Source of the DNA: Calcarisporiella thermophila CBS 279.70
Lineage: Eukaryota; Fungi; Calcarisporiellomycota
Assembly: GCF_041956535.1 (NCBI RefSeq)
Contig: NW_027192192.1
Span: forward strand, 87,793-151,792
DNA length: 64,000 nt
Direction of reading: 5' to 3'
A program made the position numbers and the translations under genes. Below are positions 1 to 48,757 of the stretch, piece by piece (within the stretch, counting starts at the first letter, position 1; every line of letters starts with the position of its first letter). The notes below the pieces were generated by a model that was given only the letters and a program-made list of their open reading frames with translations, did no database searches and was not told the origin of the DNA.

Positions 1-2
1 TT

Positions 3-3000
3 CTATGTAAAGGTTCAACAGAGGCGCCCGAAGAAAACTCGAATATTATTGAAGAACTCGTATCGTTGCTTTTTCCTACTGTAATATTCTTCATTAGAGG
101 GGGCCTGTTTGAAGATGCTGAATATCTAGCCAAGCTGGCATTTTCTGCTTCGAATGCCACAAAGCACCCACTCAATTTGGCAAGAGCTGAGAGCTGTCTA
201 TGCTATCTTTTTTCGGCAAAAGGAGATTTCATTTCGGCGGAAGAGCACTGCAGAAATGCTTTGGATATTCGCAAGAGAATGTTAACGGTCGGACACAAGC
301 TCACACGATCCTCTCTGCATTACTTAAAATTCATCTTGGAAAAATTGAAAATGGCGGATGGTACAATATTCGAGGAAATCGGGAATGCCGATTATATTGC
401 AAAATCACCAACGGTAGAATACGAATTTGGAAGAGTTGATTTCACACCCCTTCACCGCTTTGTTCGGTACTATGAATGCGAACACGTACATAAATGTGCC
501 GAGAGATATAAGTGTTTTGTGGATACAGGCGACGAAGAAGGAACAACTCCTTTACATTTGGCAGCGCAACTGGGTAGAGTCGAAGTAGTGAGGATGTTGG
601 TATCTGAGTTCGGTGCAAAAGTGAACATCAAAGACGAAAATATAAGGACTCCGTTGCATTTGGCAGCGCAACAAGGTATGGGTGAAGTAGTGAGGGTGTT
701 GGCGACTGAGTTGGGTGCAGAAGTGAACATCAAAGACAAAAATGGTAGAACACCTTTGCATTTGGCAGCTGAAGAGGGTAAGGATGAAGCAGTGAGATTA
801 TTGGTGACCGAATGCGGCGCACAAGTGAATATCAAAGACATCGAGATAAAAACTCCATTGCATTTGGCAGCGCGAGGAGGTATGAACGAAGTTGTGAAGA
901 TATTGGTGACTAAGTTCGGTGCAATTGTGAATGTCCAAGACAGATGGGAAAATACTCCGCTGCATTTCGCAGCGTATAAATGTAGTTGCGAAATTGTAAG
1001 AGTACTGGGAGCCGAACTTGATACAGAAGTGAGTATCAAAGATGCACAGGGAAATAGCCCACTGCATTTGGCAGCACAATGGGGTAAGGCCGAAGTAGTG
1101 AGGATGTTGGTGACCGAGTTCGGTGCAGAAGTAAATAGAAAAAACTGCAGGGGAAACACACCACTGTATTTGGCTGCACAAGGAGGTAGTGACGAAGTTG
1201 TGAGGATGTTGATCGAGTTCGGTGCTGAAGTGAATATTAAAAACAAAGTGGGAGAAACCCCATTGCATTTCGCAGCGCAAGGAGGTAGTGACGAAGTTGT
1301 GAGAATGCTGGTGTCCGAGTTTGGCGCAGATATGAATATTAAAGATACCGAGGGAATAACCCCGCTTCATAGTGCAGCACAAGGAGATAGTGGCAAAGTT
1401 GTGAGGATGCTAGTGACTATGTTCGGTGCAGACGTGAATATTAAAGACAACGAGGGAAACACTCCACTGCATTGGGCAGCTCGAGAAGGTAGTGGCGAAG
1501 TTGTGAGGATGTTAGTGACTGAGTTAGGCGCAGATTTGAATATCAAAGACAATTGGGGAAGCACTCCACTGCATTTGGCAGCACATAGTTGCAGTGGCGA
1601 AGTTGTGAAGATGCTGGTGACGATGTGCACCGCTGAAGTCAATACCAAAGACGCAACGGGAAGCACACTACTGCATTTGGTAGCAGAGAGAGGGATGGAC
1701 GACGTTGTGAGGATGTTAGTGACCGAGTTCGGAGCGAATGTTAATATCGAAGACAACTCGGGGAAAACTCCACTTCATTGGGCAGCGCATAAATGCAGTT
1801 CTGAAGTTGTGGAGATGTTGGTGACCGAGTTCGGTGCAAAGTCAAATATCAAAGACAGGTGGGGATGTACTCCATTGCATGTAGCAGCAGATATGGGTAG
1901 AGACGATAATGTGAAGAGGATGGTGATCGAATTGGGGGTAGATGTGAATATCAAAGACAGTCACGGGCATACTCCATTGCATCGTGCAGCAAGTGAAGGT
2001 ATGGACGGAATTGTGAAGATGTTGGTGACCGAGTGCGGTGCAGAAGTGAATATCAAAGCCGATCGGGGGGCTATCCCACTGCATTGTGCGGTGTATAAGT
2101 GCAGTGGCGAAGTTGTGAAAATGCTGGCTACAGGCTTCGATGCAGATGTGAACTTCCGAAATCAAGATGGGAGTTCTCTGTTGCATATGGCGGCTCAGTC
2201 GGGTAGGGACGCTATTGTGAAAATACTAGCGACCGATTTCGGCGCAGAAGTGAATATCAAAGACAATTGGGGAAGAACGCCACTGCATTTGGCATCGAGG
2301 AACTGTAGGAGCGAAGTTGTGAAGATGTTAGTGACCGAATTCGGCGCAGACGTGAATATTAAAGATAGCAGGGGATGCACCCCGTTGTTTCATGCAGCTC
2401 AGGGTAACGATGAAGTTGTGAAGACGTTGGTGACGGAGTTGGGTGCAGAGGTGAACATTAGAGATGCAGAGGGGAGTTCCCCGTTACATCTAGCAGTTCA
2501 GTGGTGTAGGGACGATACTGTGAAGATGCTGATGATTGAGTTCAAAGCAAAGGTGAATATCAAAGACAAGTGGGGAAAAACACCGCTGCATTCGGCAGCA
2601 CAGATTGGCAGAGACGGTATTGTGAGAATGTTATTGACCGAATTTGGTGCAGACGTGAATATGAAAGACGATCTTGGAAGAACCCCGTTGCATGTGGCAG
2701 CAGTGTATGGTAGAGACGATATCGTGAAGATGTTGGTGTGCGAATTCGGCGCAAAATTAAATATTAAAGATGAAGAGAAAAACGCTCTGTTGAGTATGGC
2801 ATTGCAGAATTGTAAGGACGATATTGTGAAGATGTTAGTGACCGAATTTGGTGCAGACGTGAATATAAAAGACAATGATGGAAGAACTCCGTTGCATTTG
2901 GCAGCAGAGTTGGGCAGAGATGTTATTGTGAAAATATTAGTGACCGAGTTTGGTGCAGATGTGAATATTAAAGACGCAGAGGGAATAACTCCACTTCATT

Positions 3001-3182
3001 ATGCAGCACAAGGTTGTAAGGACGATGTTGTGAGGATGTTAGTGACCAAATTTGGTGCAGACGTGAATATCAAAGACAACTGCGGAAGAATTCCGTTGCA
3101 TATGGCAAGCCGGTGGTGTGATGACGATGTTGTGAAGATGTTGACGACTGAGTCCGGTGCACAGAAGAATACCGAAGATTAA
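3..3182 (+). CDS. TPR-like plus ankyrin-array protein (26 ANK repeats), 5'-truncated by the window edge; possible NLR-like receptor C-terminus
   Basis: The frame is open from nt 3 (LCKGSTEAPEE...), so the listed TTG at 66 is not the start. A TPR-like segment (GDFISAEEHCRNALDIRKRML) is followed by 26 G-x-TPLH-x-AA ankyrin units. No introns within the window. Confidence 0.9.
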   Translation, partial: LCKGSTEAPEENSNIIEELVSLLFPTVIFFIRGGLFEDAEYLAKLAFSASNATKHPLNLARAESCLCYLFSAKGDFISAEEHCRNALDIRKRMLTVGHKLTRSSLHYLKFILEKLKMADGTIFEEIGNADYIAKSPTVEYEFGRVDFTPLHRFVRYYECEHVHKCAERYKCFVDTGDEEGTTPLHLAAQLGRVEVVRMLVSEFGAKVNIKDENIRTPLHLAAQQGMGEVVRVLATELGAEVNIKDKNGRTPLHLAAEEGKDEAVRLLVTECGAQVNIKDIEIKTPLHLAARGGMNEVVKILVTKFGAIVNVQDRWENTPLHFAAYKCSCEIVRVLGAELDTEVSIKDAQGNSPLHLAAQWGKAEVVRMLVTEFGAEVNRKNCRGNTPLYLAAQGGSDEVVRMLIEFGAEVNIKNKVGETPLHFAAQGGSDEVVRMLVSEFGADMNIKDTEGITPLHSAAQGDSGKVVRMLVTMFGADVNIKDNEGNTPLHWAAREGSGEVVRMLVTELGADLNIKDNWGSTPLHLAAHSCSGEVVKMLVTMCTAEVNTKDATGSTLLHLVAERGMDDVVRMLVTEFGANVNIEDNSGKTPLHWAAHKCSSEVVEMLVTEFGAKSNIKDRWGCTPLHVAADMGRDDNVKRMVIELGVDVNIKDSHGHTPLHRAASEGMDGIVKMLVTECGAEVNIKADRGAIPLHCAVYKCSGEVVKMLATGFDADVNFRNQDGSSLLHMAAQSGRDAIVKILATDFGAEVNIKDNWGRTPLHLASRNCRSEVVKMLVTEFGADVNIKDSRGCTPLFHAAQGNDEVVKTLVTELGAEVNIRDAEGSSPLHLAVQWCRDDTVKMLMIEFKAKVNIKDKWGKTPLHSAAQIGRDGIVRMLLTEFGADVNMKDDLGRTPLHVAAVYGRDDIVKMLVCEFGAKLNIKDEEKNALLSMALQNCKDDIVKMLVTEFGADVNIKDNDGRTPLHLAAELGRDVIVKILVTEFGADVNIKDAEGITPLHYAAQGCKDDVVRMLVTKFGADVNIKDNCGRIPLHMASRWCDDDVVKMLTTESGAQKNTED
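526..3165 (+). repeat. Coding tandem repeat, mostly 102-bp/34-aa ankyrin units
   Basis: Recurrent DNA core gttgtga(g/a)gatgtt(g/a)gtgaccgagttcggtgcaga(a/c)gtgaatat(c/t)aaagac; 26 units counted from the translation. Confidence 0.9.
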
Positions 3183-10793: not shown

Positions 10794-13714
10794 TCATTTT
10801 TTTTCAACCGAGATGATCTCTAATCCCGAAAGTACCGCCGGCATTTTCCCGAGAGACTTAAGGCGCACGTCCACCATGCCGGAAGCCGCGTTGACTTGGT
10901 AGGTGAGTGAGAGAATTCCGGCTGCCGAAGATCTTCGGATATCGATGTTTGGGAAAACCAGCTGTCCCTGCACATACACATCCATGGGGCGCATTCCAAT
11001 ATTGAGGTCCTCCTGCGGTTCTAATAGGTGTAGCTTGAGGTCGTAGAATCCGGAGTCGACCGGAACTTGGTATTCGAATTCAGGGCCGAATCGGTAAGTC
11101 TGGTAGACAAGAGAGGGCGCAGTGAAATCGGAGGCGTTGAAGGTACGCAGGCGCCCCGGCGGGATTTCCTCCCACTTGCTTTTACTTCCTATGACGTAGT
11201 GATCCATGTCCCAGAAGATTCCGTCTGCAGAATTGTTTGTCGTGCGTGCCCCGGCGTTGAGTCTAATCTCGGGTCGATAATGCCACTTGACCTCATCGCT
11301 GGCAATCGTTTCTCCCGCGTCTGAGCGCCCTTCAACCCGGATGGTGTTCTCCCCTGGAGACAACTCCACGTCCCAGAAAACTATTGTCCGGTTAGACGGA
11401 ACGTCGCTCGTCGCCACCTCGTTGTCGTTCACCCTCACCACCACGCTTTCTATCCCCTTTCCCAAGTACACTTTCACCTCATTTTTTCGCAAGTGTCTAT
11501 GCACAAATCTTCGATTGTTGATATACACAAAGGCCTCTTTGCTCCACTGTGCCTTGTAGAACCAGTAGGCGTCCTTTCTAACCCCACGGTCGTAGGTCAC
11601 AAGCCCTTTGTCGTTTCGCCCGGCCCTGTCACCCTCATTGCGCAAATCGATTGCGAAATCAAAAGCATTCCACACAAATTTGCCCCAGATGTGAGGCCGT
11701 GCTTTTAGAACAGCCCAGTGATGTTCATGGACGATGGCCTGCCAGGCTTCCGGGTGATACAACTTTAAAAATTCGGGCCGCTTGTTGCCATCATACCCAT
11801 GGTGGTGAATGGAGGCGCCTGCGCCATACTCGCTCATTGCAAATCGGTATTCTGAGTGGTTGTGGTGGATTTCGTCCAGCCAGGGGCCGACATCCTCAAG
11901 TACGGGGCGGTACCATCCAAAGTACTTGTTGTATCCATGCACGTCGGTGTGTTCCACGACAGGGTCGTCCTCAGGCCGACAACAGTGGGCCATGGTAGTT
12001 AGCCTTGTGTCGTCCTCCTCATGGGCCACCTTGTTCAACGTGGCAAGAAGCGGGTCGGAGTTCATCGGATGCCCCTCAAATTCGAGGCGTGGCTCGTTTG
12101 ATATGCTCCAAAAGAAGATGGAAGGGTGGTTGTAATTCTGCCGGATGAGGCTACGCAGTTGCTCAATCGCATTAGAGGTAAAAGCGATGTCTTCAGTAAT
12201 AAATTTCACAACCGGGATCTCCGCCCACACACACAGCCCCGCTCGATCAGCCAAATCGTAGGTGTGTTGGTCGTGTTGGTAGTGGGCCAGTCGCAAACCA
12301 GTTATTCCTAGCTAAAAATTGTGATGACTTAGAAAACATTGTTATTAAGAGGGGGAGAGATATGCAAACCACCTCGAGAACAATGCTCACGTCCTCCTCG
12401 CGGTCTTGGTCAGAGATAGCCCAGCCTTTATGCTCCCGGTCTTGATGCATGTTTACCCCGTGCAATTCATAGGGGCGCCCGTTGAGGAAGAACCCTTTCT
12501 CGCTATCTACATTGAACCAGCGGAAGCCGACTGGTTGTGCGACATGATCAGTAATCTCTCCGCCGTTCACAACAACCTCCGCGTGAATTTGGTAAAGATA
12601 CGGGTCATCGCGGCCATTCCACAGATGTGGTCGCTCCACCGTTGTGCTCTGCTTCAACTCAGCTTTACCATGGGCAGGTATTGTTTGCGAGGGGCTATTG
12701 AATTGCTTGACCACGCGGCCTTCCATGTCCGTTAAAGTAAATCTGACTGACACCTCCACACTATCTTTGCCGTCATTCTCAACTCGTGCCAGTACATCCA
12801 AGCTCGATTCACGCTCGGTGACATTTCGAGGTGTAGCATAGAGTCCGGGTCCCCCATAGTCCTGCATGGCCAGATGCACCTGGTTCACCGCTACCAGTTC
12901 TACCCCGCGATACAAGCCGCCAAAGAAAGTAAAATCACCTGAGAGAGGAGCAATATCTGGGTCATAAGAGTTGTTCACCCGCACTGCTAGCAAATTCGGG
13001 AGGTTGACTTCCGGGCGAAGGAAAGCTGTGGCATCAAACTGGAACGCATTAAATCCGCCGCGGTTCTGACCGAGGTGGTGGCCATTGAAGTAGACATCGG
13101 TGACTCGGTTGCTGCCATTGAAACGTAGAAAGACCTGGCGAGAGTGCATTTCGGGCGCAATGAACAATTCCCGCCTATACCAGGCAACTCCCCTGTAATA
13201 GTCATCTAATCGAAATGTCGAAAATGATCTCAGCTTAGATTCCGCTGCTAAAAATAGCACCACAAAAATAGATACCGTTGCCGTCTTCTCCGTCGAGTCG
13301 ATTCCAAGAGTGGGGCAAATCAACGCCTCTCCACACCCCACTCTCCTCGAAATCCTCGCTCTCCGCCCCAGGAACATCGACGCGCGCATATCGCCACCCT
13401 CTATTTAAAGAATCAGACAGTCGTAGGGCTCTGAATGGCGGTGTACTCGAGAGCTGAGAGGATTGCGCTTTGGCTTGAATGACAACAATGAGAGCAGAAA
13501 TGAGGACCGTTAGCAAACATGCCCCAAGCACTAGAAGCGCTATGGTTGAGATGCGGATGCGCCTTAGGCAGTCGTGCCAATGCGCTAAGCCCCCTCTTGG
13601 GTCATGGACCGGCTGAAACTTGGATTCTTCGCCTTCGATTTCCTTGTCCTCGTCTCCATCGTCGATGTCTCGGGTTGGGATGGAGATAAAGGGGATTTCC
13701 TCAGCTTGCTCCAT
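10794..13714 (-). CDS. GH2 beta-galactosidase/beta-glucuronidase-like enzyme with an N-terminal TM anchor and a C-terminal malectin-like domain; introns 13206-13275 and 12312-12372
   Basis: GH2 motifs VDLPHSWN, YYRGVAWYRR, GGLYRGVEL, GFFLNGRPYELHGVNMHQD, RLAHYQ, WSISNEP (acid/base) and MSEYGAG (nucleophile). C-terminal RLNAGA...YQTYRFG..FEYQVPV..G.YDLKLH is malectin-like. Both introns are GT-AG and restore the frame. Confidence 0.9.
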
Positions 13715-27261: not shown

Positions 27262-28146
27262 TTAAATGAGTGCACTAGCAACTGAAGTCCGGCAGGGATC
27301 AACGACGATCTCACACCCCAATCTTAGGGCCTGCTCCACCGCACACCGAGCACACTCAGCCAGTCCTTGACAATACACCTTGAACCCAAAGGCAGAGAGC
27401 ATGTCGGAAATCAACGGCCCGTCCACCTCATCATTCGCCAGCCAAACGTATGACCCCAGCAGCGCGCTTAAATTTCGCTCTTTGATAGAGTCAGACAGCA
27501 CCTCTAGATCAACCAGTCTCCACCCACCAGTGCAGGGTGTCTCCGACTGAGCGTGACCGCATGGTCGGGAACGTCCTTGGAGTACGCCTCGTGATGCTCC
27601 CCATACCTGCACCGGTAATCCAGCACCCGTGATCTGCCACCCTTGGCGCTCTAATTGTGGCTCCCCACATGCCCATGCAGGGGCCTTAACCGCTTGGCCG
27701 CTTAACACAGTCATCCTATGGCTACGCCGGCGATAGTCATTCATGTTTTCGCGGGTGTCCGGATCACTGCACTCACTGCCGCGACACTCACTGTGAAACC
27801 GCCGCATAGTTATGAAATTTTTAACTGCCGATTCAGGTCCCATGCCCTGGTTGACCCACGTATCCAGCCAGGCTTCATCACCGACCACAACAAGGCACAT
27901 GAAGTCACAGTCAATCGCGGACGGCGAGGTGGGAGGCTCCAGCAGTTTCTTGACCTCTGGTGACACTGGCTCGTCCATGTTGGCTTCTTCCTGCGCTCGG
28001 AACCATGCCAATACCTTGCGTGCCTCAGCGTGGGTCATGGGTCCGGGTGAATGACACCCTTTATCTCCGGAGTATGCTTCGAGCTCAGGGATCGGCGTCG
28101 CATAATCACGTTTGAGTATATCAGCTATAGTCTTCAAAGTCGACAT
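27262..28146 (-). CDS. Intronless orphan protein, copy A (~294 aa from the first ATG), with CGH...CARC candidate metal ligands
   Basis: Open ORF. The first in-frame ATG (MSTLKT, 28146) is positionally conserved in copy B (MSSIKI, 30012). Confidence 0.65.
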   Translation of the reverse strand: MSTLKTIADILKRDYATPIPELEAYSGDKGCHSPGPMTHAEARKVLAWFRAQEEANMDEPVSPEVKKLLEPPTSPSAIDCDFMCLVVVGDEAWLDTWVNQGMGPESAVKNFITMRRFHSECRGSECSDPDTRENMNDYRRRSHRMTVLSGQAVKAPAWACGEPQLERQGWQITGAGLPVQVWGASRGVLQGRSRPCGHAQSETPCTGGWRLVDLEVLSDSIKERNLSALLGSYVWLANDEVDGPLISDMLSAFGFKVYCQGLAECARCAVEQALRLGCEIVVDPCRTSVASALI

Positions 28147-29077
28147 ATAGGCAGCCAAAGATACGGAATCACTACTGTACTGGCCTGAAGGGTTTAGAAT
28201 GGTTAGTGCTTGGCAGGAACTGATAATAGTTAATAGACGAGGCACGCACTTTTGCAATGAATCAGAGTATTATCAACCACGCAGTTGTTTGTAGGGTAGT
28301 TGTATGCGTTGCTGACTGTACGGTTGCTAGTTGGCAGTGTAGTTATTGAGAAGAGAAGCTGCAAGTTCACTGCAACCAAGAGTAGGCGCCATACGATTCA
28401 TCACATATTCAGGTCGGATATTCAAAACCAGTTAGACCTAGAAATTTAGATATCGAGGAATCAGCCAAAATTTCAGAACCTCAAACTGTTATTTGGGAAA
28501 ACTACAGTACATTATGAACAGTTGTTAAATCGCGAAAATCGAAATAATTCACATACAAAAATTCGCCTCACGGTTTATATTGCAAATGTATTATATAGGA
28601 TAAATAGGTTGAATGGAGTGTAACTCCTGATTCAAATATAAGAGGATATATATTTAAATGAATCATCTTTTCTTCATATAATCCACCATTAATTGAGAAA
28701 GTATAAAAAAGATGAGCATCTTATCTATTATCTCTATTTTTTATATCTTTGTAAATCAAGTACTAGCAGGCATTTCTGATGATCCTACCCATAAGTTATC
28801 TAAAACAACGGTTTTCAATGGTGTATAAAATCCACTTGTAGAACTTTTAATTTTTACGGAATTATTGAATTTTTTACGAATCTTATTACGATTTTATTTT
28901 TTGTGTAATAAACACTAGTATCATTCGAACTCTACCTGTGTTTATTGCAATGGCCTTGCGTAGAAAACAATCCAGGAACCTTTACCTTCTTCGGTTATGC
29001 CGGTACACGATGACCGCGTTCATTCTTCAGGAAGCAACTCGACAACAACCACGCCCCCCTGCAAGTAAACAATCATA

Positions 29078-30012
29078 TTATTTTAGCCTCGCACAGCCCG
29101 GCATTCAAACCTCAGGTGAACTACATGTTTGCATGAGCGCACTAGCAACTGCAGTCCGGCAGGGATCAACGACAATCTCACATCCCAAGATTAGGACCTG
29201 CTCCACCGCACACCGAGCACACTCAGCCGGTCCTTGACAATATACCTTGAACCCAAAGGCGGAGAGCATGTCGGAAATTATGGGCCCATCTACCTCATTA
29301 TTCGCCAGCCAAACGTATGACCCCAGCAGAGACGTTATATTCCGTTCTCTGATAGAGTCAAACAGCACTTTTAGATTAACCAGTCTCCACCCACCAGTGC
29401 AGGGTGCCTCCGACTGAGCGTGACCGCATGGTCCGGAACGTCCTTGGAATACACCTCGTGATGCTCCCCATACCTGCACCGGCAATCCAGAACCCATGAT
29501 CTGCCACCCTTGGCGCTTTAACTGTGATATCCCACGCGCCCATGTAGGTGCCTTAACTGCCTTGCCGCTTAGCACAGTCATTCTATAGCTACGCTGGCAA
29601 TAGTCTTTCATGTTTTCAAGGATGTCCGGGTCGTGCACTCACTGCCGTGACACTCAGTGTGAAGTCTCCGCATATCACTGAAACACTTGACTGCCGATTC
29701 AGGTCCCATACCCTTGTTAGTCCACGTATCCCGCCAGGCATCATCACCAACCACAACAAAGCACATGGAGTCAAAGTCAATCTCGAACGGCGAGCTATGA
29801 GGATCCAGCAGTTTCTTGACCACCTGAGACACTGGCTCGTCCAGGTTCGCTTCACGCTGCGCTCGGAACCATGCCAATACTTTGCGTGCCTCTGCGTCGG
29901 TCATGGGCCCGGGTGAATAGCACCCTTCATCTTCGGAGAATGCTTCAAGCTCTTGGCTCGGCCTCCCATGAAGACGTTTGTATATGTCCGCCAAAATCTT
30001 TATAGATGACAT
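29078..30012 (-). pseudogene. Orphan gene copy B, with a 1-bp deletion frameshift (~29633) and a premature TGA (29105-29107)
   Basis: Two overlapping ORFs (29608-30123, 29105-29638) align to the two halves of copy A. Junction on the + strand: A ccggatcactgcactc vs B ccgggtcg-tgcactc. Confidence 0.8.
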
Positions 30013-31553
30013 ATAAGCAGGCAAAGATACGGAATCACTACTGCAATGGCCTGGAGAGTTTAGCAAGGTTAATGCTCGGCGGTAACTGACAATTGTTAAT
30101 AAACGAGGTACGCACTCTCGCAATGAATCAAAGTATTTTCAACCAGGCAGTTGTTTGTAGGGTAGCTATATGCGTTGCTGACTATTCGGCTACTACTTGG
30201 TAGCGTTTCTTTTCTTTGAGAAGAGAAGCTGTAAGAAGTTCACTGCAACTGAGAGTAGACGCTACATTACATGTTCAGGTTGGAAATTCCAATTCTGATC
30301 AGACATACAGAATTTAGAAATCGGGGATTCAAATTCCCAGGAGAATCTGCAACTGTTGATATGGAGAGTTTCCAACAAGAATCAGGTAGAATCAAATAAG
30401 AATTATGAATTTTGATTGGCCAAACTATTCATAGCTAAATCCTTAGTGCTATTTGAGAGCCAAAAACTCTATTATCCATGCTTGAGCTTTCATTTTTAGT
30501 GTAGTAGATTCACATTCGCATGTAGTTGTTTTCTATTTACTTGATTTAATATATTAATATATACCCCAAAACTTTCCTTGATATTTACCATAATACTCAC
30601 CTTCGAATCTACTTTAAAGCCCTAAAATCTAACTAGACTTGCTAGTGGCTTTTAATCCACTCCTTGAACCCCCAAAGCTTTAATAAATTGACTAGAGGTT
30701 CGAGAACAACTGATAATAGCCTCAAAGAGAAAAAGGATTTTCTCGCTAACATAATGAACCTCTTTCCTTTGAGGTAATCAACCGTTGCTCTTGTACCTCT
30801 ATCTTATGCTAGGAATTTCTCCCATATTTACAACTTCCCGTAAAAAAACATATCCATGTACATAACCCTTCAAAGAAATGGTAGTCAGGGAATTCGCAGG
30901 AGACTGCCAAGAGAGTGGGATGGAATTTCAGGCTTAAACCAACTCCCTAAGAGTATAAGAATGAAAATACAATACTTTGGCCCCATTGCTTCTTTCGAAC
31001 TCCTCCTGTCCCCTCTTTTTTCTTCTTTTACCTCTTTCCCTTTTCCTCTTTTCCTCTCCATGCGTTCCAGGGACGGTTGTGTCACCCCCTTATTATTCTT
31101 TATGGGCATTTTCTGGTGAATTTCAATTTTCTCTTCAATCTTACTCAGAACCGCTATGTGCAAGTATTGTATTATTTTCATAGGAAAAAGATAAGATCGA
31201 AATTTCTCGATCAATAGGTTCCTCATTTTCCTCCGGTCTGCTGGTCCTTTCATAGTGGAAAACTTGATTAATAGATTTTTCGCTTGAACCCCGCGGTCGT
31301 TTGTTTCTTGAGAGGGTTTCTAAAAAAAAACGAAAGCAACCAGTTGAGAAAATAGCTTTCTGGAATTATTGCTATGAACAATAAATTTTTAAAGATATTG
31401 ACATTACAGATACAACTGATACTTCAATTTAAATTCAGCATATCTCTCAGATTTGAATCTCTCAAGTATCTGAGCTTAAATTTAACGAGTCGAGAGGAGA
31501 GGATGAATAGAGGGTTTATTGCCATTATATAGAAACGGGAAAATCTACAATAA

Positions 31554-40077: not shown

Positions 40078-41279
40078 TCACTTTCCGCATCCTGGGCATC
40101 CTCCAACCTGCTCTGTAAGATTGAATGGCTTATACCGCCCAAAAAGAAATGTCCCCACGGCTATCCCGCCAACAACGGCGAAGAACAAGCCCACGTTAAA
40201 CGTCATTGTGACCAGCATCAGAGCATAGGCAATCGTGGAGTCCACGAATTGCAGGGCCGCTCTCTTAAAGTCCCTGGTCACACCCTCCCGGGTGAAAGCC
40301 GCGCGCAGGAACCTGTGGATCCAACTCTGCTTGGTGAGGCCATCGCTCATGTCCGTGGAGCGGAAGCTCTGCTGAGCCCAGCGGGCTTCCAGGATGCTGC
40401 GAGAGACAGTGAGGGCCTCATAGAGGATGGCAATGATGAAGATTGCAATCCAGGCACCAGCATATTGACCAGGGGTGCGTGGTACCCATTCGCGGAAGAG
40501 GACATAGTCCATCAGACCAGTGTGGAAGTACATGCGCATCTGCGGAGCACTGGTGGAAGACGAGGGATCCGAGGTGCAGTAAGGGAGTTCGGAAGCGGCA
40601 GCGCACATCGTCTTCCATTTTCCACATTGTCTCTATAGGAAATGAACATATAGGAACGTAGTTAATTTCACGTCGAGAAGTATCAAAACACATCCACACC
40701 CACCATATCTGGCATTGCTTGACACAGCTGGCTATATACAGCAAATGGATCGCATTTCGTCATCAAACTTCCCGGCGGCATCTTAGGGCATTTCTCGCAC
40801 CCGTCCATGTCCATCTCCGTGCAAATGCTCCCCACTAGGTCGGAAGCCTCCATTGTGGTGGGAAGACCAGACAGGGCGGGCTGAGCGTCACATTGGGGCC
40901 CACGGGGGGCAGTATAGGTTGCATTGCGGGAGCAGAGCGCCACGTAATTCTTGCATCCTCTCATGCGGGGCATATCGGTGGCACAAATGTCCGCAAGCAA
41001 GGAAAAGGAATTGCAAGATTTGGACGAGCTGAGGTTGGGTGTTTCCTGGCAAGTTTTCTGGACAGTGCAGCCGGACATGAAAGGCATTTCTGTGCACAGG
41101 TCCTTCAAGTCGGCGGCAATAGTTGCTTCATCGAGTTGGAATGAAGCGCATTGCGGGCGACTCATGTCTGCAAGGCACGAAAGATTGGAAGGGGCAGCGG
41201 CGCCCGGATTTTGGGCAGACGCGAACGCCGCCATTAGGAGGACAACGACAACGAACGTTTTCTCCATGGAAGTGAGCAT
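40078..41279 (-). CDS. Ctr-family copper transporter with a signal peptide and a Cys/Met-rich ectodomain (Dictyostelium p80 / Chlamydomonas CTR type); intron 40633-40703
   Basis: Signal peptide; four C-x2/3-M-x1/2-M-x2-C units (CTEMPFMSGC, CATDMPRMRGC, CTEMDMDGC, CQAMPDMRQC); MRMYFH...VLFREW; TM2 YALMLVTMTFN (MxxxM); TM3 GIAVG (GxxxG). Confidence 0.92.
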
Positions 41280-41618
41280 GGCTCTCTTTTCGGCAGAGGG
41301 ATGCAGTTTAGGGCAACCAAAGATGCTACTGACTCGGCAACAATGTATGGGTAAAAGGGAGGGAGAGAGTTTAAATAAGAATGGAGACACGCTAGCCCGG
41401 CAATGCTTTATTTGTCTAGGCTCTCTTTCTTGGTCTATCCACTAAAACACGGATAAATGGAGAACATACAGGTGAGCGTAGGGAAAGCCAACGGTGTACG
41501 TAAAGAGCTGCATTTTATATTTCTCCTATAAGTTGTGCTATGAATCGACAATCAGGCAGTCACATATTCTATTGTATACGGGTTGTTAATAAATGGAGGT
41601 TATTAATTTTAAAATAGG

Positions 41619-41652
41619 ACAGGAATGCTTAAAACATCCGAAACAGGAATGC
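41619..41652 (+). promoter_or_regulatory. Direct repeat ACAGGAATGC x2 in the divergent Ctr / ectodomain-paralog promoter
   Basis: Identical 10-mers at 41619-41628 and 41643-41652; each contains GGAATG (reverse CATTCC, the TEA/ATTS-type core). Function is inferred only. Confidence 0.3.
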
Positions 41653-41818
41653 AGGGGGGGGTCCCCATTGAAATGTTAATTAATCGAATTCCCCCCCCCC
41701 TTCCATTTATTGTTTTGAAGTCAGACAAAGGGTGACAATAACAAAACGAAAGCGAAGCTTATATATTTTTTAAACTTCCTGTCGCGTTCCCACCATTCGA
41801 CAGTTTTCTCTATCCAGC

Positions 41819-42635
41819 ATGAAGACCCCCTCCTGCTTCGTACTTCTTCTCTGCGCTCTGGGCGCCTCTGCACAGCAACAGAACTGCGCCGCCACCCCCA
41901 CTGATGCTAAGTGCGCGGATTACACCCCTGCTAACGCACAGCAGCAGCTCGATTCCATTTGCACGGCCCAAAATAATCTCCCTGCCTGCAGCATCTATGG
42001 CGAGTGCAAAAAGGACACCACGCTCCCCCAGAGCGTCTGCTCCCCCGCGGTGCTCCTCGCCACGGCCTGCACTCGGGACAATGTCACGGCGGCCGATGCG
42101 TGCTCGGAAATTAAGCAGCTGTGCGGCGCCGGCACCGCTGTGAAGCTGTGCTCGCAGGCTGTCCCCGCTCCTTCGGCGAAGGACGCGAGCCGGGACCTCT
42201 ACAGCGCTTGCTCACAGATGCCCGAAATGAAGAGTTGCACCATCTGCCCCCAGAAACCCGACGCAACCACGAATGTGTTCCAGTGCAACGTTATGTCAGC
42301 CTACTCTGCGCTCTGTAACGAGATGGGTACCCATGTAAGTTACCATAATAAGCATCGATCTTCAATGGAAGGCCTCATCCATTAATCCCCTTCCTGCCCC
42401 CATTTTCCAATAGAGCGAGTGCGCCAACTGGAAATCGTTCTGCCAAGCCACCAATAACTTCAAACCCTACTGCTCTGGGGCTGGAAGCAGCGGTGGCCAC
42501 GATATGTCCAATCACAACCACAACGCTAAGCCATCTTCTACCCCATCCTCCACGCCAAAGGCGTCGTCTGCCTCCACCCTTGTATCCACAAGCTGGGGCC
42601 TGATGGCTATTGCACTCGCGGTTATCATTATGTAA
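41819..42635 (+). CDS. Secreted, GPI-anchor-type Cys-rich protein homologous to the Ctr ectodomain; intron 42335-42413
   Basis: Signal peptide MKTPSCFVLLLCALGASA; Cys spacing collinear with the Ctr N-terminus (CSQMPEMKSCTICP, YSALCNEMGTH|SECANWKSFC...PYC); GHDMSNHNH, a Ser/Thr linker and hydrophobic end WGLMAIALAVIIM*. Confidence 0.85.
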
Positions 42636-44624
42636 AAAAACCTTTGCATTTTCTTATTTGTGTCTGTTCCACCGCGCTATGCCTTTGAAATGATCATTTT
42701 GCAGTTGCATTGAGATAGGAGCTCTATTTAAATAAAGTCAGAACTGATTAACATACTTTCGATTCCTGTCAAAAAAAGTAGATACTACTCTGATAGTATA
42801 GTGGGTGCTTCTGAGAATCCGACCGTTAAACTCTCAGGGCTTTGCAAATAAAACAAAAACAAAACAAGTGCTTTATGCAAAGAACGCGACGCTTCGACGA
42901 GCTTCCAGGGAGAAGTGCATTCCCATCGGCTACCTCGGCACATCCCTTGAGTATTCGATTCTGTAGGGTGGTTGCAGCTAGGCCTCTATCCCCTTATTCA
43001 GATTCCGTATGTCTCAGGGGATGACTAATTTATACGCACCGCTCAGGGCCGGTGCGAAGAGCACTACCCATTGCCGCAGGAATGAACTTGGTGATCTCTT
43101 AAACGATATAGTTCTCGGTATATCTTTTCATGCTCTTCCACCTATCTCCCCCATCCCGACATCCATGCTCTAATTGTTGCTCGGGCGCTATGACAATTCC
43201 ACATCCCTATCAGCCAACCATCATTGTTGAATTTAGAACAGCAGCTTGAAGCAGGCGCGGGAGTCAGAATCATTTCGAGTTCCCGTGAGACGACATTGGC
43301 TCAGAGCCGCACCCACGACGAAAGTTGTGTTTAAAGAGAATGTTCGAGGTAGGTTTCTATCACCCAGCAGATGGGATGGGGCAGAGCAACCAGTTTTTGC
43401 AGACGAATTTGACACCTACGGAAATGGAAAGTTGCGAACGCAAAAATCTCTCAAACCATAACTAACCCAAAATTGCGTTTTGGTGTAACGCCGTGACTGT
43501 GAGTTGTTTTCGCCTCCACCAACCACGGGGCAGAAATGAGCGTGGTTATATGGAGAAAGGTTTGAGGTATTTTGGCTTATAAAAAGGCGCCCACCTGCAA
43601 AAGAGTTGAAAATTCTTTCGCAAACTTTTTCTTGCGCACTTCTTATCCTTTCCTTCTACTCTTCCAACTATTCGAGCCTCACTCCTATAGTTTGGTATAC
43701 CCAATTGTGTGCAACTGATGTGCTAGCAGTAGGTTTAGTCTTTGTCTGTAACCCATGGTATTCCCTCTATAGTCTCCCTGGTTATCGCCCCTTGCCTATG
43801 CTTATGGGTGGGGCCACCAGGATTGTGTCTAGTGTCTATTGCATTTAGTATACCCCACATTCATCTACCTCTGCATTCCATGATGAATCATCTCACTGCA
43901 ACCATAGCCAAGTGGTATGACCTAGGACTTTGATACTATCTCTATACCTGCTCTATCTTCGTGATGCCATCAGTGGCTTAGCTATGTCGTCATTTTGGGG
44001 TGGTGGAGTAGTCAATTTAGTGTCCGGAATTTTTTACTCTTGGGGACCACCCTGCGTTCCCAGTGCTTTTTCCTTAGGCTGCATGGTACACAAGCGCCTC
44101 TTTGTGTTTTAAGCATGGGTCTCGCGATCCCACTGTTTTTACCACCCGTTCCACTCCTCTCTATTGTATTTGCCAACGCTTTAGTCGCGTTCATATCGGA
44201 CCTTGTTTGTGAATGTTTTGTTCTCACGCCAAGTTGACTTTCATGCTTCCATGATAGAACTGTGTTCACAAATTAATGCCTCCTAACCTTCCATCCCAAC
44301 GCTAGTAGGGTGATGAGTGGATGGAAATTGACTCATGTTTGATGAATTGCCCTCCACCGCCTGGGTCACCGAGTATAATTGATTAATTAACGTGTTTCCA
44401 TGCCAGCTCTGTGTTTTTTACCCATTTTAACTTTATTACCGGTCGCAGAGCGATGCTTGGGAAGGTCTGATTTTTTGCGCGTGGTATATAAACGCGTCTC
44501 TTTTTATTATCCTACTCTTTACCCCCATTTAAAGTTTGAACGAGCTTTTGACAGGCTCTTTTTCTCTCTATTTAATAAATATCCTCCTTGGATTCATTTC
44601 TTTCCGCTAATAATAATAATAATA

Positions 44625-45325
44625 ATGCTCCGACAACTGTCTCTCGCTACATTGGTGCTGGCAACCGTGATTTCCATGGCAGCGGCCCATGTTACCATGA
44701 ACCCCAATACCAATGCCGCCAACTCGTACTTTGCGAGCGCCTTCCGTGTTCCCCACGGTTGCAACGGCTCGCCCACCACCCTGGTTTCACTCAAGATTCC
44801 CGGTAAGTGATGAGATGAGCCAACGGGAATGGCGGAGCCCCGTCATGCTAAAAAAAACCCTTTCTTCCCCGCGCAGAATCCCTCACCGGTGTGAAGCCCC
44901 GTATCATGGCCGGATGGAATATCACCATCGGAACGAAGCCGCTCGACCCCCCGATCACTGCAGAGGGAGGCAAGACCATCAACACCACCGCCGACACCAT
45001 CACATGGACCAACGGGCTTATCCCGGACAACATGTACGAGGACTTCTGGCTCTCCTTCCGCCTTCCCCCCTACGATGACCCCAAGACCATCAACAATACC
45101 GTCTACTTCCCCGTGTCGCAGCAGTGCCAGGACGGCACCTGGCTCAACTGGACCCAGATCCCCGGCTCGGGCGCCTCGTCGTCGCAGAACCCGGCCCCGT
45201 ACATCAAGCTCACTAACGGCAACACCCCCGCCCAGGCCAGCGAGAAGAAGAGCGACGCCTCGAAGTTGAACGCATTCGCCGGGGTGGCGCTGATGGCGGC
45301 TGTCAGTTCCCTCATGATGCTATAA
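44625..45325 (+). CDS. YcnI/DUF1775-family copper-binding protein with a signal peptide and GPI-type tail; intron 44803-44876
   Basis: Signal peptide ending AAA, then mature HVTMNP...FRVPHGCNGSPTT.VSLKIPE.LTGVKPR.MAGW.I...ITWT.G...DF...FRLP...VYFPVSQQC..G...NW...PAP; hydrophobic C-terminus. Confidence 0.88.
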
Positions 45326-46084
45326 AAGGCGGTCGCCTGTGTCACGTGTGGCTCGGTGTTTTTCGGTGTTCTCTTTTTAATTTTAATATTCCAGAAACAA
45401 TTTTAAGCAGTTTTTTTTTTCTATTTCATTTCCTATTTGCCTCCTCTCTTCCTGCTTCCACTAGGAAGCCATGCAGGGTGGAAGCGGGGATATTTATTCA
45501 CTATGTCCTTATTGCCTATTCTCTCAATTTATGCTTTTCCCCTCGACCCTCTGTGGCTTTAGTCCCCTTATCCACACTGTTTAGTGGTCCCCGATTTGTG
45601 TCGATCTATTATTTCGCCATATTGCTATTCTCTTTGAAAATAAGTCATTTCTACCCATCTTTCCAACTCAGTCGGGTTCCCCAGCGCCGGCAAAGGCAAA
45701 GCGACCTTCCTCTTTGATCTTTTTTCATTTCCAGAAGCTTTGGCATTTACCAACCAGATCGAAAGAAAAGGAACCATGAAATGGGGTCTAGTTCCCCCTT
45801 TCCTACGATTTGTAATATTTGTAATAAAAGACATGGCGGACCCCCTAGCCCTAACGGCCTATTTATAAAAGTGCCGGCTCCCTTCCTGAATCCCTTTTTT
45901 CTTAGAAAAAAATTTTTTCCCAACTTTTTGTTTTGAAAAAGGTTCGACGAGAACTGAAACAGCCTTGAAAAATAGCCTTGGTGTGATTGCTATTTCCCGT
46001 TGTTTTATCTTTCAAGTCTTTCTTCCAGTGCTTCCTCTCTTTTTCCCCTCCTCCATTGTTGACACCAGCATACGACTGCAAAGG

Positions 46085-47394
46085 ATGGTGAAAACGGTTG
46101 TGTCTTTGCTCGCGTTGGGCGGATTGGCATGCGGTAATTATTCCAGCCCATGTTTCTAGCTCTTGCTTCCCGTGCTCTGAAAAGACCATTGGATGGGCTG
46201 TTTGAAGATTTTGGCTAATATATCCCCTTCCCATCTGCGTATGAATTAGCTGCCGTTGACCTAAAGCCCCAAACGGGCCAGCTCTGCTTCCGAAACGAGC
46301 AATTGTGTATCGCCGCACAAATATTGCCCACCGGAAATGCTTTTGAGATGACCTTAATTGCACCGCAGAATATGGGGTAAGAAAACTGCTGCATCCGTCT
46401 CCTTTTGCCAATGTGCATAGCTAAATAACGGTTATGTTCAATTAGCTATGTGAGTGTCGGAATTGGTGAATGGATGATCAATGCCGATATCATTGTGGCC
46501 TGGCCAACCGCCAATCAAAACTACACAATCTCGGACCGCAAGGCCATCGACTATGTCGAGCCCCTGGTGGACAGGCAGCAAGATGCCGTACTGGTGCCCG
46601 AAAAAAGCGGTCTTCAAAACGGCAAGCACTACATCACGTTCCGTCGCCCATTACGGACAGGAGACTCCTCGGACAATCCCGTCGTGGCGGGAACTAGAAT
46701 GGCATGGATATGGGCCTTGGATAGTCAGCGCCCAAGCAGCGCATTTGAAAATGCCACGCTCAACCCCCATGGGAGCGAGGGTGTGGGCCGATTCTCGATG
46801 GCTCTGACCCCCGCCGGGATTGCAGGCACTTCGGTGCAAGCGCGATTTGACATTGGGGGGCTTGCCTTCTTCCACGGGCTACTGATGGCCTTGGTGTGGC
46901 TGGTGGCTGGCCCGCTGGCGGCATTCATTGCTCGCTTCCTGAAGGCGACGATGGGCAGTGCTTGGTTCCCCGGGCACTGGGGCACCGCTACGGTAGGCGT
47001 CGTGTTGACCCTCATTGGGTTTGGCCTTGGAATTGCGGCGACTCGCGGCGCGCACTTCACCACTCCCCACACCATCATCGGCCTTATTGTGGTCATTCTC
47101 ACTCTCTTGCAAGCAGGGTGGGGCATCTACATCGATCGGACCTTTGATCCCTCGCGCGTGAAAACCCCTGCCCGTGACTACCTTCATCATGTAGGAGGCT
47201 ACCTGCTCGTCCTCCTTTCCATAGCCAATGTGTGCTTGGGCTTGCTGGCGTTCGGCCCCGGAAGTGGATGGATCTTTGGGCTCTACGGCGCATGGGTTGG
47301 GCTCATCGTGTTTACGTTTGCGGGCGCGCAGATTCGAAAGACCTTGAGGTCGATGCGGACGAAGGAGGTCGAGGATATAAAATCGCTTTCTTGA
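46085..47394 (+). CDS. DOMON + cytochrome b561 transmembrane reductase (CYBDOM-like); about 3 exons
   Basis: Signal-peptide exon; DOMON GYVSVGIGEWMINADIIVAW...WIWA...LNPHG (Met/His heme ligands); b561 histidines HGLLM, PGHW, PHTIIG and LHHVGG; TATAAAA at 45864. Confidence 0.88.
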
Positions 47395-47929: not shown

Positions 47930-48757
47930 TTATAGGTTCAGGTTCTTGAAGACTCTCACCAAATCGAGCAGGCGCTCTTTTGAAGGCGTGGTCGCTTTGA
48001 CGCTGGGATGGGAGATCACCGTCTGAGCATACGCATTCACGCGCTCATACTCTTTTGTCTCCGGGACGTGGAACCCGACTTCTTGGAGAAGCTGGTATCG
48101 AACAAAGAAGGGGGCGGCGGCAATATCGGCGTAGGTGAATTGGTCGCCTAGGAAATAGGGCCCGTTGGACTGTTTGACGAGGGCGTCGTTGATTTCACGT
48201 AAGCCCTTGAGGAACGCCTCGTGCTCTTTTTCGCCTTTCGAGAAGGCCCGGTAGTAATGGGGGGTGACTTTGTTGTCGAGAAGGGCGACAAAGATACGCG
48301 ACTGGGCGCGCAGGAGAGGGTCCTCGACGAAAACAACTATATCAATCAAGATTGCGTCATTAAGTGTCTATGTTTCACAAGCTGTCTTCACATGAGGACA
48401 CGTCGTCCCCTCGCCTCCCCTACTTACCCCTGGTCCTTCCCGTACTTCTCGAGCAGATATTCGACGATGACGAGCGACTCGATGAGGATCGTGTCGCCCT
48501 CCTTAAGGCTGGGAACTTTCCCCTGCGGATTGATCTTGAAATACCTTATATAGAAGGCAAAGGAAGTTAGTTTCCCTTCCAAGGACACCAGCCTGTGGCT
48601 TCATTCATCCGCGTGCATACCACTCGGGCTTGTTATCAAGGTCAATTTCGAACGTTTCGTCCGGAACAATGCCCAATTCCTTCAGCGTGGTAGCTACGCG
48701 ATGCGCGTAAGGGCAGTTGTCGTGGTTATAGAAGTTGATGGCTGATTTAGGCGACAT
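47930..48757 (-). CDS. Glutathione S-transferase, omega-like class (3 exons)
   Basis: NCPYAHRV active site, DLDNKPEW|YFKINPQGKVP, IESLVIVEYL, GPYFLGDQFTYADIAAAPF. Confidence 0.92.

Follow-up and report, generated by a model that had tools for sequence, protein, structure and literature searches.

Linkage of Ctr, stand-alone CTRA, YcnI and DOMON-b561 genes suggests a cell-surface copper-acquisition module in early-diverging fungi

Ctr pores carry Cu(I), and eukaryotes first reduce Cu(II) outside the cell (bioRxiv 10.1101/2023.10.19.563170). Ctr proteins bearing a domain named CTRA (CTRA-CTRs) are copper importers in Chlamydomonas, where CTR3 is secreted under copper deficiency; Strenkert et al. 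had already named the domain and its stand-alone copies and listed early-diverging fungi as carriers, in a paper that holds no neighbourhood analysis and treats neither glycosylphosphatidylinositol (GPI) anchors nor DOMON domains (bioRxiv 10.1101/2023.10.19.563170). Bacillus subtilis YcnI binds Cu(II) tightly, depends on its membrane anchor and promotes growth when copper is limiting, and the YcnI literature that we examined makes no mention of fungi or eukaryotes. The Arabidopsis cytochrome b561-DOMON protein (CYBDOM) HYP1 reduces Fe(III) and Cu(II) (PMC10784544). Here we describe a locus of the fungus Calcarisporiella thermophila CBS 279.70 (Mucoromycota), within a 64,000-nucleotide stretch of contig NW_027192192.1 (the window, in whose coordinates positions are given), that places relatives of all these proteins side by side. 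The best overall explanation, and in our judgement a likely one, is that they belong to a cell-surface module for copper acquisition that early-diverging fungi have conserved.

Window positions 40078-47394 are filled by four spliced genes with open frames, g1 on the minus strand followed by g2, g3 and g4 on the plus strand, which encode 376, 245, 208 and 374 amino acids, respectively, in GT-AG spliced models. The models were matched exon by exon, and the joined versions were read, aligned and used to build trees; support for the introns comes from GT-AG signals, from homologues and, for g3, from the annotated protein, and signal peptides and GPI anchors were called by eye and by hydropathy with a 19-residue cut-off. 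Each protein has a hydrophobic N-terminus (that of g2 falls under the hydropathy cut-off), and g2 and g3 also end in hydrophobic tails. These open models and their Pfam matches bear out a first-pass annotation that had seen four secretory-pathway genes with metal- or redox-binding signatures in this interval.

The first gene, g1 (40078..41279, minus strand; exons 41279-40704 and 40632-40078), encodes a predicted Cu(I) importer of the known CTRA-CTR family. It combines a signal peptide, one 190-residue Cys-rich CTRA domain with four Cys-Met motifs, a Ctr domain (PF04145; E = 7e-32, 111.5 bits against a cut-off of 25.3) and a C-terminal CxxC. The sequence hallmarks of Ctr/COPT proteins beyond the Pfam cut-off, namely three transmembrane (TM) helices, MxxxM (331-335, in TM2) and GxxxG (348-352, in TM3), are all present, with a conserved Met ahead of TM1 and hydrophobic stretches at 248-273 and 325-359, the latter covering TM2 and TM3. 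The earlier description of g1 as a Ctr with CxxMxxMxxC units thus stands for its identity and motifs, although only two of the four motifs have the strict form and the other two are spacing variants. Donor 40703 was picked because it keeps the spacing of the homologues; donors 40699 and 40671 result in stops, and 40691 is in frame but adds four residues inside a conserved motif. Exon 1 retrieved 400 relatives at E <= 0.001, and relatives of the Cys-rich domain occur in Mortierellaceae, Basidiobolus, chytrids, green algae and amoebae.

Its divergent neighbour g2 (41819..42636, plus strand; exons 41819-42334 and 42414-42636) encodes a stand-alone CTRA protein with a GPI-type tail, homologous to the g1 ectodomain (25-27% identity) and without a Pfam match. 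The cysteines are kept, and Met ligands are gone from the N-terminal half and retained in the C-terminal half, leaving one strict CxxMxxMxxC and one copy with His replacing Met; rather than the full set of four Met-bearing motifs, g2 and its orthologues retain the two C-terminal ones only. By this pattern g2 is a reduced CTRA variant, and a His/Met patch precedes its anchor. The first-pass annotation had called it a GPI-type copy of the Ctr ectodomain; the homologous stand-alone domain and its hydrophobic tail are there, but the domain had already been published as CTRA. We assigned g1 and g2 to CTRA through matches to a Volvox multi-repeat protein (E = 1e-49) and to amoebozoan proteins, among them a 195-residue Dictyostelium protein and Heterostelium proteins; C. 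reinhardtii CTR sequences were compared by description only. An alignment of 82 CTRA sequences contained 13 invariant Cys and 6 near-invariant Met. The AlphaFold model of the CTRA domain of a Mortierella homologue (P0003) was all-helical (pLDDT 87, pTM 0.83), and fold searches with it against solved structures returned nothing significant, which is no proof of a new fold; a confident model with no match among solved structures makes CTRA a good structural target.

The third gene, g3 (44625..45325, plus strand; exons 44625-44802 and 44877-45325), encodes a GPI-type YcnI protein identical over its equal length (100%) to annotated C. thermophila VTP21DRAFT_4130. It matched Pfam DUF1775 (PF07987) at E = 5e-22, and at full length with E = 6e-39 and 134 bits against a cut-off of 25. 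His22 and Trp151 are invariant, and Trp151 aligns with Trp137 of B. subtilis YcnI (7ME6). Signal cleavage before His22, which we infer, would give the mature N-terminal His that the first-pass annotation had noticed in a YcnI protein. Homologues were found in Mortierellomycotina, Umbelopsis, Zoopagales, Blastocladiomycota and Chytridiomycota; all fungal sequences in the tree set have a hydrophobic tail and nearly all an RVPHGC motif. They form one group in the YcnI tree with support of only 59/54, and monophyly of the Mucoromycota was not rejected (p-AU 0.26). g3 is not among the entries in two supplements of a survey of horizontal gene transfer. The first-pass annotation had also described a mixture of eukaryotic and bacterial-type parts; the YcnI family assignment holds, but since YcnI spans four early-diverging fungal phyla, 'bacterial-type' can at most denote a very old origin; the protein is old in these fungi and lacks the B. 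subtilis ligand Glu50.

The last gene, g4 (46085..47394, plus strand; exons 46085-46133, 46250-46376 and 46446-47394), encodes a CYBDOM protein with Pfam matches to DOMON (E = 3e-12, 47.2 bits against 32.7), Cytochrom_B561 (E = 5e-6, 27.2 bits against 23) and CDH-cyt. The residues characteristic of the family, a DOMON Met/His pair (Met69/His167) and four b561 His (His202, His236, His267 and His306/307), are in place, with heme-ligand positions read from motifs against the HYP1 pattern.

Copy numbers in the C. thermophila genome (28.2 Mb, 116 contigs) single out this locus. A genome-wide search found only two CTRA genes, g1 and g2, both here, and a single YcnI gene, g3; there are four Ctr loci and two DOMON-b561 genes, g4 and one elsewhere. 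We then compared neighbourhoods of 10 kb on either side in eight other lineages. The Mortierellaceae (Mortierella GBAus27b, a second Mortierella assembly, Podila and Linnemannia) have a stand-alone CTRA gene head-to-head with CTRA-Ctr, then YcnI. This stand-alone gene is unannotated and encodes 259-273 residues, 31-36% identical to g2 (E = 1e-24 to 1e-26); the protein has a His patch, ends in a hydrophobic tail and contains two Cys-Met motifs. The CTRA pair also recurs on a metagenome contig, and the locus tags of Ctr and YcnI are adjacent in Mortierella 14UC. Separately, the Mortierellaceae proteins at loci L008:5600-6379, L011:3916-4737 and L013:7847-8644 have His-x-Gly-His-Asp at or just past the predicted signal cleavage site, possibly an extra Cu(II) site that g2 lacks.

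Synchytrium microbalum has the order Ctr (minus), YcnI (plus) and a 404-residue gene (plus), so that the order and orientation of Ctr, YcnI and DOMON match the window. The first half of the 404-residue protein matches g2 (E = 1e-16) and the second half the g4 DOMON (E = 1e-17), in the layout signal peptide, CTRA, DOMON with both heme ligands, and hydrophobic tail. A single splice solution reproduces the annotated length, with the CTRA-DOMON junction within one exon. Its DOMON is 35% identical to that of g4 (E = 2e-21), scoring 73.6 bits against g4 and 61.6 against the other DOMON-b561 of the C. thermophila genome. A tree built from 45 CTRA domains places g2 as the sister of this fusion (99/86) and groups the pair with the Mortierellaceae partners (89/94); stand-alone CTRAs from Dictyostelium, algae and other chytrids branch elsewhere. 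A local search of all fetched CTRA matches found no other DOMON fusion, and ten long CTRA matches carry only Ctr and no DOMON.

The link to Ctr was therefore repeated in two of the eight lineages, and some copper-handling neighbour of YcnI in four. Assuming ~10,000 genes, a rough binomial P for two matches in eight is 1e-5, or 2e-4 if any of the four Ctr genes counts. Flanking genes (Vps11 on the left in C. thermophila) differ among Calcarisporiella, Mortierellaceae and Synchytrium, as do gene order and the side on which YcnI lies. Because both CTRA genes and the sole YcnI lie here and the linkage recurs in two of eight other lineages, the four-gene grouping exceeds chance; conserved linkage in relatives, a sequence check that the first-pass annotation had proposed, was thus found in two groups of fungi. 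Chytrids branched off the main line of fungi 1,401-896 Ma (PMC12592215). As the YcnI tree is compatible with vertical descent, the simplest history would be an ancestral cluster that was dispersed in many lineages, with repeated assembly or transfer also possible. The YcnI tree, in which Synchytrium stays among the chytrids (88/83), gives no support to a horizontal transfer of the complete cluster between Synchytrium and Calcarisporiella.

Other YcnI neighbourhoods offered observations of their own. In Syncephalis plumigaleata (L012:5176-10621), YcnI lies beside a ZIP transporter, which has a signal-like N-terminus followed by His and by a Cys-rich loop, and a 76-residue HMA (Atx1-like) gene; this may be a second type of neighbourhood for metal uptake, with ZIP in place of Ctr. 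Paraphysoderma sedebokerense (L017:8116-10720) has a divergent HMA (Atx1-like) gene 1.4 kb from YcnI; further partners are not visible because the contig ends 380 bp beyond YcnI. In Umbelopsis isabellina (L015:7994-9715), YcnI has another redox neighbour, a pyridine nucleotide-disulphide oxidoreductase gene that starts the same way round and lies 285 bp upstream. Neither the 284-residue gene facing Fimicolochytrium YcnI nor a 577-residue Blastocladiella gene, both considered as CTRA candidates, is a CTRA, and nothing in a 9.7-kb unannotated Cladochytrium stretch matched CTRA, Ctr or DOMON. Both Fimicolochytrium and Cladochytrium do have a CTRA-Ctr, on a contig other than that of YcnI. Metagenome contigs L024-L026, which look algal or amoebal, carried CTRA-Ctr but neither YcnI nor DOMON.

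Candidate control elements accompany the genes. The 539-bp spacer between g1 and g2 (41280..41818) is divergent, and this head-to-head arrangement is kept in Mortierellaceae. An unbiased k-mer count picked out the 8-mer TTTGACAG, with 17 copies in 12.0 kb of Mortierellaceae cluster spacers versus none in 17.2 kb of other spacers at these loci; since these data also served to choose the motif, its nominal P of 3e-7 is inflated. Strong enrichment was seen in the cluster spacers of loci L008, L011, L013, L020 and L021. Two held-out Mortierella-like contigs had six and four copies beside cluster genes. C. thermophila has two copies between g2 and g3, where its genome-wide rate would predict 0.10: one at 42766..42773 (minus strand) and one at 44547..44554 (plus strand), 78 bp upstream of the g3 start codon, which belonged to the motif-discovery set. 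The motif is absent from the g1-g2 spacer, the g4 promoter and the Synchytrium spacers. Its distribution suggests co-regulation in Mortierellaceae and is a weak sign of it in C. thermophila, whose genome has three copper-fist factor genes. A likeness of TTTGACAG to the yeast Cup9/Tos8 homeodomain site could not be confirmed. A second motif, GGTACTC, recurs in Mortierellaceae cluster spacers (7 versus 1), and both motifs are candidate copper-response elements.

Two features of the C. thermophila spacers stand apart from these motifs. ACAGGAATGC occurs twice, 24 bp apart, in the divergent g1-g2 spacer (41620-41654), possibly as a factor-binding pair. The 2-kb gap between g2 and g3 has a TATA-like box at 43579 followed, up to 44380, by a pyrimidine-rich stretch and intron-like signals, which might reflect a non-coding transcript or an upstream g3 exon; a hidden gene in this gap was rejected, with no protein match and no convincing match to other loci.

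Copper acquisition is very probably the job of the unit, and g1-g4 are probably switched on together under copper scarcity. Met and Cys sites favour Cu(I). We infer a relay of four steps: anchored YcnI (g3) would collect Cu(II) at its N-terminal His site; g4 would pass cytosolic electrons outward through three hemes, reducing Cu(II); Cu(I) would then be caught by g2, the anchored CTRA protein, at its Met pairs; and the g1 Ctr would receive the Cu(I) on its CTRA domain and import it through its pore. A reduction step is needed because the partner of YcnI here is a Cu(I) Ctr and not a CopC-CopD protein, and the Synchytrium fusion speaks for CTRA and DOMON working close to each other. For the full mechanism, with the g4 DOMON-b561 as the Cu(II) reductase, the evidence leaves us evenly divided. 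The first-pass annotation had envisaged a module for capture, reduction and import; linkage of Ctr, CTRA and YcnI in Mortierellaceae, and of Ctr, YcnI and CTRA-DOMON in Synchytrium, supports its outline, but reduction is the weakest step, because b561 is linked in this genome only, Mortierellaceae have no linked DOMON, and FRE enzymes are available. More tentatively still, the relay might be old and independent of FRE, with a heme DOMON passing electrons directly to CTRA-held copper (as two genes in Calcarisporiella and fused in Synchytrium), YcnI as the Cu(II) collector, CTRA as a helical Cu(I) carrier and a non-Mac1 factor controlling the unit through TTTGACAG.

Several observations weigh against the copper-acquisition module or its proposed mechanism. 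Ctr was absent near YcnI in Umbelopsis, Blastocladiella, Fimicolochytrium, Cladochytrium, Syncephalis and Paraphysoderma (one side truncated), the first four of which had no copper gene of any kind there, and neither YcnI nor any other copper gene was found near the Basidiobolus CTRA-Ctr. The placement of g2 beside the Synchytrium CTRA is good but not final, because both branches are long (~1.1) and bootstrap values are not fully settled. In g3, VPHG lies opposite VPSE of B. subtilis and Gly45 occupies the Glu50 position, so the Glu50 ligand is missing; His44, one residue before it, may substitute, and the YcnI paper notes that proteins with His and Trp may have a distinct function or another ligand set. 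Sites matching the Dikarya consensus for Mac1, Cuf1 and Ace1 were not common to the promoters, and the g1-g2 spacer had none for Mac1 or Cuf1. Loss of Chlamydomonas CTR3 gave no phenotype (bioRxiv 10.1101/2023.10.19.563170). HYP1 uses ascorbate (PMC10784544), which need not be the electron donor in C. thermophila. The Synchytrium DOMON has no b561. A second DOMON-b561 in the genome (L032, G000:C11, ~291900-293000, minus strand) is 51% identical to g4 and has both DOMON heme ligands; it would also be a useful unlinked control for copper regulation.

The observations on reductases bear on an alternative that we consider unlikely, in which the module comprises Ctr, CTRA and YcnI only, copper reduction falls to FRE-type enzymes from other loci and the DOMON-b561 reduces iron or gives electrons to other extracellular acceptors. 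None of the four Mortierellaceae genomes has a DOMON within 10 kb, C. thermophila has five FRE/NOX loci whose products could reduce copper, the shown role of HYP1 is Fe(III) reduction, the relevance of its Cu(II) reduction having been called unclear, and a DOMON neighbour in one of eight lineages, taken alone, has P ~0.03. The one other case, in Synchytrium, is nevertheless a heme-ligand-bearing DOMON fused to g2's own CTRA subfamily, and by bit score it is nearer to g4 than to the unlinked DOMON-b561.

Still less probable is a role of the anchored proteins in storing or buffering copper at the surface, or in loading secreted copper enzymes, without feeding the importer and with shared regulation as the only reason for their clustering with Ctr. 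In cell-wall-less Chlamydomonas, CTR3 did not stay with the transporters, and losing it left no uptake phenotype; g2 lacks half of the Met motifs, and a YcnI lacking Glu may differ in function or ligand set. Ctr proteins, on the other hand, import, and CTRA-CTR genes are induced by copper deficiency; loss of Bacillus YcnI slows growth under copper limitation; and detoxification would lead one to expect an exporter or a metallothionein, neither of which is in the cluster. That the genes are chance neighbours or neutral relics of ancestral order, with g2 a local duplicate of g1, is very improbable and already largely refuted: Ctr is missing from six of eight YcnI neighbourhoods and tandem duplication often leaves a domain copy next to its parent, but the core is constant while flanks differ in three lineages and order and the side of YcnI vary, g2 is nearer to the stand-alone CTRAs of Mortierellaceae and Synchytrium than to g1, and both the binomial estimate and the age of the chytrid split oppose it.

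Downstream of g4, a convergent gene (47930..48757, minus strand) encodes an omega-like glutathione S-transferase (GST) with a CPY active site and a Pfam GST_C match. The first-pass annotation had listed an omega GST after the four genes; the gene is present, but we place it outside the conserved unit because it is not linked elsewhere, with no GST match in the comparison loci examined, including the called genes of the Mortierellaceae loci. Its membership of the cluster was accordingly rejected. The consensus second intron (donor 48427, acceptor 48337) leaves the frame one base out, beside a run of four G (48428-48431), pointing to either an assembly error or a pseudogene. As speculation, an intact GST could in principle recycle the b561 electron donor through dehydroascorbate-reductase-type activity. 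Elsewhere in the window, an intron-free frame of at least 1059 codons with ~25 ankyrin repeats (1-3179, plus strand) leaves the window at its left end. A long GH2 glycoside hydrolase exon (10797-12311, minus strand) has a C-terminal malectin domain, an architecture known mainly from bacteria. Tandem paralogous open frames without a Pfam match lie at 27265-28269 and 29108-30138 (minus strand), the second split over two frames.

The first-pass annotation knew of no such cluster in fungi, and our literature searches, which covered few subscription journals, likewise found no description of the cluster, of a eukaryotic YcnI, of the Met-reduced anchored CTRA subfamily or of the CTRA-DOMON fusion. 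The families of g1, g3 and g4 are known ones, although g3 falls outside the Glu-type mono-histidine brace within DUF1775. Stand-alone CTRA proteins, eukaryotic YcnI and fungal CYBDOMs are parts without a shown role, which linkage across ~0.9-1.4 billion years and the CTRA-DOMON fusion tie to one job. If true, the module would show copper uptake outside Dikarya without the Cbi1/Bim1 route and an alternative to FRE reductases; the four-gene set could be rebuilt in yeast, and Mortierellaceae gain a candidate copper-response element.

Yeast takes up copper with Fre1/Fre7 and Ctr1/Ctr3, and fungal metal-uptake genes can be paired, as in oxidase-permease pairs. The locus resembles these systems in its reduce-then-import logic and in a divergent gene pair sharing a promoter, and differs in having a candidate b561/DOMON reductase in place of an NADPH flavocytochrome, plus two extra surface binders. 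Compared with the CTRA-CTR family (Chlamydomonas CTR1, CTR2 and CTR3; Dictyostelium P80 and its soluble copy), g1 likewise joins CTRA to Ctr and g2 likewise has CTRA without transporter helices, whereas the GPI-type tail of g2, its old subfamily without N-half Met motifs and the Synchytrium DOMON fusion set it apart. g3 shares with the YcnI of B. subtilis ycnKJI, a mono-histidine-brace Cu(II) binder, the DUF1775 domain, N-terminal His, conserved Trp, C-terminal anchoring and a copper importer encoded beside it, but it is eukaryotic with an intron, has a GPI-type tail and carries VPHG without Glu50, as do many proteobacterial homologues; YcnJ is a CopC-CopD protein, and the fungal partner a Cu(I) Ctr. 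With HYP1 (PMC10784544), g4 shares the DOMON Met/His heme pair and four b561 His at similar spacing, but it is fungal and linked to copper-uptake genes; AIR12, like the Synchytrium fusion, has a DOMON without b561. The best functional analogue is the Cbi1/Bim1-Ctr1 system of Cryptococcus (PMC9258870), in which a GPI-anchored histidine-brace copper protein works with Ctr under copper limitation. Cbi1 is LPMO-like, whereas g3 is a DUF1775 protein, and the Calcarisporiella locus adds a second, Cys-Met anchored protein and a linked redox gene in a physical cluster.

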